This document shows positions 42,001 to 45,000 of a stretch of 64,000 nucleotides of DNA, in pieces; position 1 is the first letter of the stretch; every line of letters begins with the position of its first letter. The notes under the pieces were generated by a model that worked only from the letters and a program-made list of their open reading frames with translations, was not told the DNA's origin and did not search any database. The position numbers and the translations under genes were made by a program. This DNA comes from Macrostomum lignano (taxonomy: Eukaryota): the NCBI GenBank assembly GCA_002269645.1, contig NIVC01000033.1, forward strand, positions 361,335-425,334, given 5' to 3'.

Positions 42001-45000
42001 CCCCGCACAGATTCGAAGCAGTGGTCAAGGTGCCCTGCCCAATCACACTATGAGACTGCATCTTCAGAGCTGCTCACAAAAACCCGTTCCAGATTCAACT
42101 TCCCGGAAGGCCGGCCGGCTCAGAATTTCGATACATTCGTCAAAGGTCTGCTCACCGTGTTCCAGGTGAGCAGTTTGCTAGTTTTTTTATATTTGTACAG
42201 CTTGTCTACCAGCTAGGGATTTTTAGCGAGAGCCGATAGAGCGAGAGACTCAGCTGAGTAATGCAGTACAATTGCACTTCCGTTCAAAAACACGTGCTGC
42301 GCAGATTCTGACCAGCGAAGACTGGAACACTCTGATGCACTTTGGCATCCGCTCGCAGCGGGATGACGGCGGCGGCAACGGCATGTGGGCCGCCGCCTAT
42401 TTTGTTATACTGCTCATCTTTGGCAGATGTATCCTTCGCTGCGTGCTAATCAATAAATTAGCGGGCTATGGAGGATTATCCTCATATTGATTTTCATAGG
42501 GCCGCCAAATACGCTCGTAAAAGCAGTTTCAACATGCGGTGAATGGGCTGCTTGGCCAGTACGTGTCGTCCTGTCCTGTCTCCAGTGCACAAAAGTACAA
42601 CCCCCCCCTGAAAGGTGCCGTACGCTACAGTGATTTATTCATGTAAATTTACGTCATATATGCCTAATTTCTTGGCTGATGTTATGAAATTCTTTGCGGG
42701 CACTGAGTCATCCAGTTAAACTGAGCTCCCAGCCGTCTCAGTGTAAATATTAGCCAGAATGTTGTTGAGTGAACAGTATATTCCCATTGCCATTCTGAGC
42801 TGAGAACTGTGAGAACTGAAACCGTGAATTTCATATTAGTTTAATAGCAGAGCTAATTAGAGTCTAGCTTATTAGTTGGCATAATACAAGCACAGAGTAT
42901 GGGTCAACGGCCCGGACCTTGGTTTCTGGTCACTTACGAGTATCGCTATGATTATGTTGTTTGAGCTTTTTAAGAAAATGTGTACGCAATCCATCAACGT
43001 CGTTTGTTGAGCAAAATCCTTAAAGTACGAAAATCTTTTCAGGAAATAACTTTCGATTTCAAACTGACGCAATGCACAACCGAATGCCGAACCCAATCCC
43101 ACACAGATTCTCACGGGCGAAGACTGGAATCTCGTCATGTATTACGGGATTCGATCCCAGGGCGGCGTGGGCCGAGGCATGGCCTTCGCCACCTATTTTA
43201 TCCTCCTAGTGCTGTTTGGCAACTGTATCCTTGGAGCCCAGTCTCGAATATTGCCTCGAATATTTGCCTATTTTGTTAATTTGCACTTGATTTGTTTTCC
43301 TTCATGCCGCATGTGACGCAATGCGTGCGTTGGACAGGTAAATGGCATGGTAAAGCAAGGTAGTCCCTCCTTTTCAATTTCGGTAAACGTTGTCGCACCT
43401 TACTTATTTATTAATTTGGCAAAGCTGTATCCGGTAACTGTATTCCTACACCACTGATACTGTTAAATACTGTACCCGCACCCCGCACTGCGTCATCAAC
43501 TGCAATTTTCCTTAACCAAACGGCACCGCCGCAAAACCGCGACTGCTCGAAATCGAAAACGCAGACACGCTGCTCAACGTCTTCCTCGCTATCGCCGTGG
43601 ACAATTTGGCAAATGCGCAGGAGCTCACCGCCATGGAGGAGCAGAAGGCCAACGAGGAGAGAGAGGTGAGCTTGTTGTACTTGCTATCTGGCTAGCACCA
43701 TTCTTTATGCTCACTCCTGCTTCTGTCACCCATTCACTCTCACCCTGCTTCTCTCACCCATTCACTCTCACCCTGCTTCTCTCACCCATTCACTCTCACC
43801 CTGCTTCTCTCACCCATTCACTCTCACCCTGCTTCTCTCACCCATTCACTCTCACCCTGCTTCTCTCACCCATTCACTCTCACCCTGCTTCTCTCACCCA
43901 TTCACTCTCACCCTGCTTCTCTCACCCATTCACTCTCACCCTGCTTCTCTCACCCATTCACTCTCACCCTGCTTCTCTCACCCATTCACTCTCACCCTGC
44001 TTCTCTCACCCATTCACCCTCACCCTGCTTCTCTCACCCATTCACTCTCACTCTGCTTCTCTCACCCATTCACTCTCACCCTGCTTCTCTCACCCATTCA
44101 CTCTCACCCTGCTTCTCTCACCCATTCACTCTCACTCTGCTTCTCTCACCCATTCACTCTCACCCTGCTTCTCTCACCCATTCACTCTCACTCTGCTTCT
44201 CTCACCCATTCACTCTCACCCTGCTTCTCTCACCCATTCACTCTCACCGTGCTTCTCTCACCCATTCACTCTCACTCTGCTTCTCTCACCCATTCACTCT
44301 CAAATTATCAATTTGTTTATCGAATCAATTTTCACAAAGATTTTCCATACTTTCTGCTGCAATTACCATTGTCGTGGCTGCATTATGCTCAGCAAGTTTA
44401 TGACGCATTGTAAACCAAGCAGCAGGCTATGCTTTTGCGGAAAAATAGGCAGGCACAGTGGAAACCCCTCCGCCTGCTCAGGACTCGCCGCTCGCACAGT
44501 TGAGTCCAGGGAGGAAGAAACGCTTGCTTGGCTTGAAGTTGCTGCTATAAAAATGCAGGTTGAGCTCCGCCCGTGAGCTGCTGACGGCCCTTGGCCAAAA
44601 TTTTCCAATCAATACCCGCTTCGCCTTGGCTAACCAGCTCCAGTGTTCTGGGACTTCTAACCCCCCCCCCCTGCTGCTGTGGTCCCCAGCGCAAACCTGC
44701 TCATTTTTCCTAGGGGGGGGGTCTGCCAACTCTTTGTGAGCTCAGCCAGCCAACCGTTAAAGTGCTCCGGCCATTCGCTTTATGTGAGGTAGCTTTCTGT
44801 TTTGCTTGAACTGGGAGGCCTGCAACCTGGGCGGGCTCCTGACTGGACTTATCGGCTGCCTGATATCCGCATTACAGCCTGGGGGTGGCTGAGGCTTTTC
44901 AATTTCCCACATTCCGCTCCTTGACTGTGACGTCAGCTGAGTTGCAAAAATAGAATAAAAAATGCTTCCAGTGACAGGGGAGGCTATTAAACAGTGGGCG

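Follow-up and report, generated by a model that had tools for sequence, protein, structure and literature searches.

Tandem filter-S6 exons with U2- and U12-type splice sites in a Cav2-type calcium-channel gene of Macrostomum lignano

The gene and its domain II exon pair

The window analyzed here is a stretch of 64,000 nucleotides (nt) of Macrostomum lignano DNA (contig NIVC01000033.1, positions 361,335 to 425,334 of the forward strand). Its principal feature is a gene for the alpha-1 subunit of a voltage-gated calcium channel (Cav), in which the exon for the domain II selectivity filter and the first half of the sixth transmembrane segment (IIS6) is present as two tandem copies, referred to as exon A and exon B. 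Open reading frame (ORF) scans and tblastn placed this gene on the + strand, from approximately 30228 to beyond 63000. Homology indicates that it is a Cav2-type (N/P/Q/R-like) alpha-1 gene of M. lignano or of a very close relative. The best solved-structure matches of its domain II segment are human Cav2.2, Cav2.3, and Cav2.1, with E values of approximately 1e-46 to 1e-49, and domain I and the AID segment show 68-71% identity to Cav2 fragments of molluscs and vertebrates. A domain I query returned matches of 71% identity at best, none of them from Macrostomum. Domains I-III are encoded in order along the + strand, and domain IV and the C-terminus lie outside the window or at its edge. The linker between domains I and II contains the beta-subunit binding motif, encoded by an exon at approximately 37199-37399, and the domain II pore has the filter Glu in TxEDW together with the IIS6 sequence expected of a Cav2 channel.

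The initial annotation of this DNA had read the pair as domain II filter exons of a calcium channel. Homology and structure matches agree with that reading, assign the channel to the Cav2 type, and show that the two exons span the selectivity-filter helix through the first half of IIS6. In the alignment with Cav2.2, G662 is the counterpart of the Ser/Gly in T(S/G)EDW, E663 that of the filter Glu, and approximately N697 that of the Arg/Asn in FG(R/N)Y. The exons, introns, and splice signals of this region are as follows; the isoform assignments are predictions.

41682-41813, + strand: constitutive exon for the IIS4-S5 linker and IIS5; donor GTGAGT; 93% identity by tblastn to Lottia and Candidula Cav2 fragments
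42093-42165, + strand: constitutive exon of 73 nt for the domain II turret and first pore helix; ends in CAG
42166-42304, + strand: U2-type intron for isoform A, 139 nt; donor GTGAGC, acceptor gcgcag
42305-42428, + strand: alternative exon A, 124 nt, phase 0 to 1, the divergent copy; open in one frame only
42429-42436, + strand: U12-type 5' splice site GTATCCTT of exon A, the same as the exon B donor and the Lottia, Candidula, and Schistosoma donors
42429-43106, + strand: hybrid A-B intron, 678 nt; 5' splice site of the U12 type, 3' end of the U2 type (cacacag)
42429-43564, + strand: U12-type intron for isoform A, 1136 nt
43107-43224, + strand: alternative exon B, 118 nt, phase 0 to 1, the canonical copy; preceded by cacacag
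43225-43232, + strand: U12-type 5' splice site GTATCCTT of exon B
43225-43564, + strand: U12-type GT-AG intron for isoform B, 340 nt
43508-43516, + strand: U12 branch-site motif TTCCTTAAC, the sole perfect match in its intron
43565-43665, + strand: common downstream exon, 101 nt, for IIS6 (second half) and the beginning of the II-III linker; follows cgcag; donor GTGAGC

Exons A and B are homologous, lie in tandem, and have the same phase (0 to 1), with lengths of 124 and 118 nt. Joining either of them to its neighbors gives one open frame, TVFQ|ILT(S/G)EDW...FG(R/N)|Y, and the B version reads ILTGEDW...LFGN|YTLLNVF. When 41800-44000 was re-read together with its translation, every motif was found where the initial annotation had put it, including the two paralogous exons that each follow a CAG acceptor and run into GTATCCTT at 42429 and 43225.

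Splice-site signals

Both exon donors match the U12 5' splice-site consensus /RTATCCTT. On the two strands of the window together, GTATCCTT occurs twice, both times at the donors of exons A and B, which is not above chance (mean of 1.37 in shuffled sequences). TTCCTTAAC also occurs twice, at 43508-43516 and in intron 1 at 30810-30818, again no more often than in shuffles. Because these counts are near the shuffle level, the argument for U12-type splicing rests on the position and orthology of the motifs rather than on their number.

By manual count, the upstream donor at 42166 agrees with the U1 consensus at 8 of 9 positions, and the donors of exons A and B agree at 3-4 of 9. No U12 branch motif (TCCTTAAC, with up to two mismatches) precedes the acceptor of exon A, and no U12 branch-like motif lies within 80 nt of the acceptor of exon B. 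This is consistent with the earlier statement that neither acceptor is served by a U12 branch site. The intron from A to B had likewise been rightly described as having a U12 donor and a U2 acceptor, since its 5' end is of the U12 type and no U12 branch motif lies close to its 3' end.

A second U12 intron lies in the same gene, between exon 1 (...IIEWG) and the exon for IS1 (PFEYMVLL...).

30560-30851, + strand: U12 intron of the AT-AC subtype; donor ATATCCTTT at 30560, branch motif TTCCTTAAC at 30810-30818, acceptor ...GCAC at 30851

This intron can be identified as the conserved IS1 U12 intron of Cav and Nav genes, in which the first minor intron, of the AT-AC subtype and located at IS1, is conserved throughout (PMC6259924). 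Its presence in the same gene indicates that the lineage still keeps U12 signals. The 15-mer TTTTCCTTAACCAAA is common to both U12 branch regions of the gene.

Ancestry of the IIS6 intron and origin of the duplication

The intron that follows the filter-S6 exon has counterparts in other spiralian Cav2 genes (positions are those of each locus). In Lottia gigantea (L002), a single exon ends in ...GGTAACT|GTATCCTTTT, with donor GTATCCTT at 18247 and branch motif TCCTTAAC at 18449, approximately 10 nt before the acceptor. In Candidula (L003), a single exon ends in ...GGCAACT|GTATCCTTTT, with donor GTATCCTT at 61273. In Schistosoma margrebowiei (L001), a single exon ends in ...GGCAACT|GTATCCTTTT, with donor GTATCCTT at 3128 and ACCTTAAC approximately 22 nt before the acceptor. 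GTATCCTT is therefore present at the same phase-1 boundary in Macrostomum exons A and B and in the Cav2 genes of Lottia, Candidula, and S. margrebowiei. The U12-type nature of the two donors, which had been proposed from their sequence, is supported by this orthology to a conserved U12 intron.

The intron has also changed or disappeared in some lineages. Schistocephalus solidus (L004 55820-55870) has an intron at the same position with the donor GTACGCCACC (GTACGC) and a pyrimidine-rich acceptor region, and this intron has apparently been converted from the U12 to the U2 type. Insect- and nematode-like genomic ORFs read through the position, indicating that the intron was lost there. Two minor introns, 2 and 13, have been reported in rat Cacna1c (PMC8767276), and two U12 introns are found in Ca-alpha1D of some insects (PMC3291851). 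The flatworm intron after exon B (or after exon A) is the orthologue of the second minor intron of these high-voltage-activated Cav genes (insect Ca-alpha1D and rat Cacna1c intron 13, the latter presumably at this same codon). The difference is that the exon before this intron is single in all other loci examined and duplicated here. No second copy of the filter-S6 exon was found in the four other spiralian loci (Schistosoma, Lottia, Candidula, and Schistocephalus).

These comparisons show that the U12 intron at FGN|Y is ancestral, and the simplest history would be that the filter-S6 exon was tandemly duplicated with its U12 donor in the Macrostomum lineage. An old U12-type GT-AG intron of bilaterian Cav1 and Cav2 genes splits the Tyr codon after FGN in IIS6. 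Tandem duplication of the exon 5' of it, which covers the filter helix, the outer loop, and half of IIS6, would have copied the U12 donor as well and produced the architecture known from the vertebrate JNK kinase genes. Any tandem duplication of an exon that lies 5' of a U12 intron automatically creates a JNK-type layout. The U2/U12 arrangement fits a by-product of the duplication site that then became a physical block. The gene contains four clusters of tandem exons (see below), and the filter-S6 cluster alone among them has U12 signals, which fits this by-product view.

Predicted splicing of the pair

The elements follow one another in the order U2 donor, exon A, exon B, U12 branch site with its acceptor, and common exon, and each of the two alternative exons has a U2 acceptor in front and a U12 donor behind. 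The major spliceosome would join the upstream U2 donor to one of the two acceptors, and the minor spliceosome would join the U12 donor of the chosen exon to the single U12 branch site and acceptor. Isoform A would be formed by removal of a U2 intron (42166-42304) and a U12 intron (42429-43564), and isoform B by removal of a U2 intron (42166-43106) and a U12 intron (43225-43564). With a U12 5' end and a U2-type 3' end, the A-B intron is predicted not to be spliceable as a unit; neither spliceosome would remove it, and exon A could not be joined to exon B. The mutually exclusive, U12-dependent use of both exons is considered moderately probable, and we infer that exon A is expressed and that the two exons exclude each other in vivo.

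The lengths of both exons are 1 mod 3, and double inclusion or double skipping shifts the frame, which provides a second, independent safeguard beside the spliceosome mismatch. The initial annotation had regarded the exons as apparently locked by U2/U12 incompatibility. The incompatible layout is indeed present, but the lock is not unique to the mismatch, as the reading frame also excludes both or neither. The further suggestion that minor-spliceosome activity could regulate the channel type does not follow, because exons A and B have identical U12 donors and use the same branch site and acceptor. With identical U12 needs, lower minor-spliceosome activity should reduce both isoforms and thus set their total rather than their ratio. 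The choice between A and B falls either to the two U2-type acceptors or to the pair of identical U12 donors.

Alternative explanations

Several observations weigh against U12-dependent exclusive use of both exons, and they concern exon A itself, the reading frame, a cryptic splice site, and the branch spacing. With regard to exon A, near-invariant positions were defined as the 25 sites that are at least 90% conserved among 79 Cav homologues. Exon B matches all 25 and exon A matches 19, departing from the consensus by G to S, V to L, Y to H, G to D, I to V, and N to R. The last change affects the IIS6 Asn, which is N in 77 of the 79 homologues and Arg in exon A. No Macrostomum proteins or transcripts were retrieved over the region, and matches to a query with exon A joined were at most 67% identical. 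Searches for exact matches to the read-through ORFs over exons A and B were also negative. Arg at the S6 Asn position was found in none of 102 homologous segments, TSEDW was found in two, and TGADW/FGSY was found in one (Biomphalaria). Likewise, no A-like exon was seen among the 120 listed matches of 725 homologues. The matches in the three homologue searches were at most approximately 1.75 times as long as the query, and full-length channel proteins were probably not among the matches listed. Exon A could be recently inactivated or non-productive. These results, together with the single exons of the four spiralian loci, would suit a relic or 'poison' copy that is usually skipped or non-productive, with exon B effectively constitutive and the U12 donor of exon A merely inherited.

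The age of the duplication and the constraint on exon A stand against a relic. Exons A and B are 57% identical in amino acids and 65% in nucleotides, with an alignment z of 8.8, and their agreement at third codon positions is close to random (18 of 40). Nonsynonymous divergence (dN) is 0.29-0.34 and synonymous divergence (dS) is 1.3-2.0, which is saturated, giving a dN/dS of 0.15-0.26. Over 117-120 nt on each side, the sequences flanking the two exons resemble each other no more closely than shuffled sequences do (z of -0.5 and +0.5), and the 8-nt donors are identical at all eight positions. Despite saturated dS and randomized introns, exon A retains an open frame, 57% amino-acid identity to exon B with conservative replacements along the S6 helix, an acceptor in CAG, and its intact U12 donor, all of which a neutral copy of that age should have lost. 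Exon A and its donor have thus been under selection for most of their history. Three other clusters in the gene likewise have intact paralogous copies, and one of these, a divergent IS4 copy, closely matches the sole IS4 exon of a cestode Cav2. Exon A carries the marks of a coding exon kept by selection and not those of a decayed copy. With its six departures from the consensus, it is a specialized variant or, less likely, a recently relaxed one. The relic explanation is regarded as unlikely.

Another explanation accepts that both exons are used and attributes exclusivity mainly to the reading frame with nonsense-mediated decay (NMD), or to exon-definition kinetics, leaving the U2/U12 mismatch as an incidental by-product. 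The reading-frame rule alone would give protein-level exclusivity for two exons of 1 mod 3. Two other clusters of the gene, IS4 and IIS3-S4, have U2-type sites only and lengths of 2 mod 3, and human mutually exclusive clusters are mostly of the frame type, with a handful of the U2/U12 type (PMC5740500). The A-B intron also contains TCCTTAAA, which matches 7 of 8 positions of the branch consensus, at 43017-43024, followed by TTTTCAG at 43037-43043. This is a possible cryptic U12 3' splice site, which might let the minor spliceosome join exon A to an extended exon B. No perfect U12 branch motif is present inside the intron, the chance probability of the TCCTTAAA and CAG combination in 678 nt is approximately 0.2 by our own estimate, and translation of exon A joined to 43044 runs immediately into TGA. 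However, the weak U1 agreement of the A and B donors and the absence of a U12 branch motif within 80 nt of acceptor B would leave the physical block standing whatever else acts, and the two mechanisms are compatible. As the main cause of exclusivity, frame and NMD are considered quite unlikely.

Docking or selector RNA pairing as a mechanism of exclusivity was unsupported, as weak inverted repeats alone were found. The best of them is 20 nt long and 80% complementary, pairs 43051-43070, just upstream of the exon B acceptor, with 43539-43558 in the branch-acceptor spacer, and is probably due to chance.

The branch spacing is the last of the adverse points. The motif at 43508-43516 lies approximately 48 nt from its acceptor, with no AG between, an unusually large distance for this class. 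The literature usually gives 12-15 nt for U12 introns (PMC3291851), and the spacing exceeds the range of about 10-20 nt taken here as typical. The corresponding distance is approximately 35 nt in intron 1 of the window, where the spacer is free of AG and of AC, the acceptor dinucleotide of that intron, and it is shorter in Lottia and Schistosoma, as given above. Long branch spacing looks like a property of the U12 introns of this species, although two introns are too few to tell. A hairpin that shortens the effective distance was rejected, as the fold z-scores of the branch-to-acceptor spacers were -0.25 to -1.3 and not significant. A nearer in-frame acceptor (AC at 43536-43537) would add nine residues to IIS6 and need a GT-AC intron, and it was rejected on homology.

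It is highly improbable that the GTATCCTT donors are handled by the major spliceosome, with the minor one lost or irrelevant and the exons forming an ordinary cassette or alternative pair, because, against the unusual spacing, the U2-like donor of the same intron in Schistocephalus, and the lack of the intron in insects and nematodes, two introns keep perfect U12 donors (GTATCCTT twice and ATATCCTTT once) and perfect extended branch motifs (TTTTCCTTAACCAAA), no used acceptor dinucleotide (AG here, AC in intron 1) follows either branch until the homology-defined acceptor, and U12 motifs decay fast once the minor spliceosome is lost.

Consequences for the channel

Exon B encodes the canonical pore, and its identity is 68-73% with the exons of the molluscs and of Schistocephalus and 70% with that of Schistosoma. 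In exon A, the outer loop is longer and more charged, the filter Glu is kept, and the Gly next to it is replaced by Ser. The initial annotation had proposed that exon A may alter permeation or gating. The changes to TSEDW and FGRY on which this was based are present, but the filter Glu is unchanged, and a change in Ca/Na selectivity is speculative; with this residue intact, altered ion selectivity is only a possibility. Judging from mutations of the S6 Asn in Nav and Cav channels, an Asn-to-Arg replacement more plausibly alters gating than selectivity. We infer a functional difference between the two pores, and a channel with exon A would most likely show altered gating and possibly altered permeation.

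A Biomphalaria glabrata UniRef fragment (P0017) that is Cav2-like in domain II has TGADW, with the filter Glu replaced by Ala, and FGSY, with the IIS6 Asn replaced by Ser. It changes the same S6 position as exon A and could be a paralogue or an alternative snail exon.

Comparison with known systems

The hybrid-intron layout of JNK2 exons 6a and 6b has been characterized experimentally, and the resemblance that the initial annotation noted to the vertebrate JNK mechanism is confirmed by the same layout here (PMC1874599). In humans, U2/U12-incompatible cases have been catalogued only for MAPK8/9/10, MAPK14, CEP170, and CRTC1 (PMC5740500 appendix). The JNK genes (MAPK8/9/10) share with the Macrostomum pair the upstream U2 intron, tandem homologous exons with a U2 acceptor and a U12 GT donor, a hybrid middle intron, and a U12 branch site and acceptor downstream (PMC1874599; PMC5740500 appendix Fig. 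S18). They differ in that JNK is a vertebrate kinase and the present gene a flatworm ion channel, no conserved long polypyrimidine tract is visible before exon B, and the branch-to-acceptor distance is approximately 48 nt here. In addition, exon usage was shown experimentally for JNK, whereas here it is predicted from sequence. The mechanism itself is well known, JNK being the textbook case, and no new principle is involved.

Tandem mutually exclusive exons that re-specify the domain II pore are also described, in the cited passages, for invertebrate NALCN (exons 15a/15b) and Cav3 (exons 12a/12b) (PMC3557258; PMC7382465). There the variation affects the filter residue itself (E/K) or the S5-P turret, whereas the filter Glu is kept here and the changes adjoin it or lie in the outer loop and IIS6. 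The cited passages do not mention U12 splicing for those exons. Exons 8 and 8a of Cav1.2 and Cav1.3 are likewise paired S6 exons whose joint inclusion or exclusion breaks the frame (PMC5740500 appendix Fig. S20). Unlike the present pair, they encode part of domain I rather than domain II and are not among the U2/U12 cases of PMC5740500, so that their exclusivity rests on frame and NMD. A literature search found nothing tying U12 introns to mutually exclusive calcium-channel exons, nor anything on U12 introns or Cav splicing in Macrostomum.

If RNA data bear it out, the pair would extend the U2/U12 hybrid-intron route, which the literature searched documents only for a few human genes, to a flatworm and to the pore of an ion channel. 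The layout would also be seen to arise in one step, when an exon immediately 5' of an ancient U12 intron is duplicated in tandem. For biophysicists, it would offer a natural pair of Cav2 domain II pore and S6 variants, including Asn-to-Arg at a near-invariant S6 site, and for splicing research, an animal amenable to RNA interference with two U12 introns of unusually long branch spacing.

Other exon clusters of the gene

Four clusters of tandem exons were found in the gene, namely IS4, IIS3-S4, domain II filter-S6, and domain III S5-P. In the three clusters listed below, the splice sites are of the U2 type and each copy is open in the appropriate frame.

32542-32633 (92 nt) and 33780-33880 (101 nt), + strand: paralogous IS4 exons; 2 mod 3, U2-type sites
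39081-39193, 39820-39932, and 40999-41111, + strand: paralogous IIS3-S4 exons of 113 nt each; 2 mod 3, open in frame
60417-60569 (153 nt) and 60814-60957 (144 nt), + strand: paralogous domain III S5-P-loop exons; lengths divisible by 3, sites of the U2 type

The shorter IS4 copy has one basic S4 residue (one three-residue repeat) fewer and is 87% identical to the sole IS4 exon of the Schistocephalus solidus Cav2 gene (L004 16804-16893). The longer, canonical copy resembles an Opisthorchis locus (L005 23290-23391). The cestode match of the short copy indicates that an exon copy of this gene can be divergent and yet old and functional. The first IIS3-S4 copy has a GC donor (TAG|GCAAGT), the other two have GT donors, and the three exons are likely to form a three-way mutually exclusive cluster. 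One of the domain III S5-P copies ends in TGEGWN(F) and the other in the canonical TGEGWP(T). As their lengths are multiples of 3, the frame rule cannot enforce exclusivity, and another mechanism would be needed.

A wider interpretation of the gene is tentative. It would have four mutually exclusive clusters with 2, 3, 2, and 2 copies and up to 24 combinations, with one cluster hard-wired by U2/U12 incompatibility as the first case found in an ion channel or outside vertebrates. The Arg-for-Asn pore of exon A would then have clearly different gating, and the branch rule would be relaxed to 35-50 nt.

Repeats and mobile elements in the window

An Rfam scan of the window gave no match. Positions 1-7300 contain copies of a DIRS-like retroelement with reverse-transcriptase and tyrosine-recombinase ORFs (e.g., 4206-6014 and 6220-7182), and the tyrosine-recombinase ORF at 6220-7182 has 98% identity to a Macrostomum lignano protein in UniRef, which assigns the window to this flatworm or a very close relative. 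Within the calcium-channel gene, a 28-nt minisatellite of 21 copies (43710-44302) begins 45 nt past the common exon. A (GTCT)n microsatellite of 2.5 kb and approximately 630 copies (45828-48351) occupies much of the next intron, and arrays similar to the 28-nt minisatellite and (GTCT)n are also found at 8.8-12.6 kb. A recently inserted retrotransposon at approximately 48746-54066 lies in the intron between the II-III linker exon (end at approximately 45824) and the IIIS1 exon (approximately 54085). It contains an intact gag-pol ORF of 1311 amino acids at 49787-53719. On either side of this ORF lies a segment of 213 nt (49606-49818 and 53718-53930); the two are 100% identical, and each adjoins arrays of the same 30-nt minisatellite.

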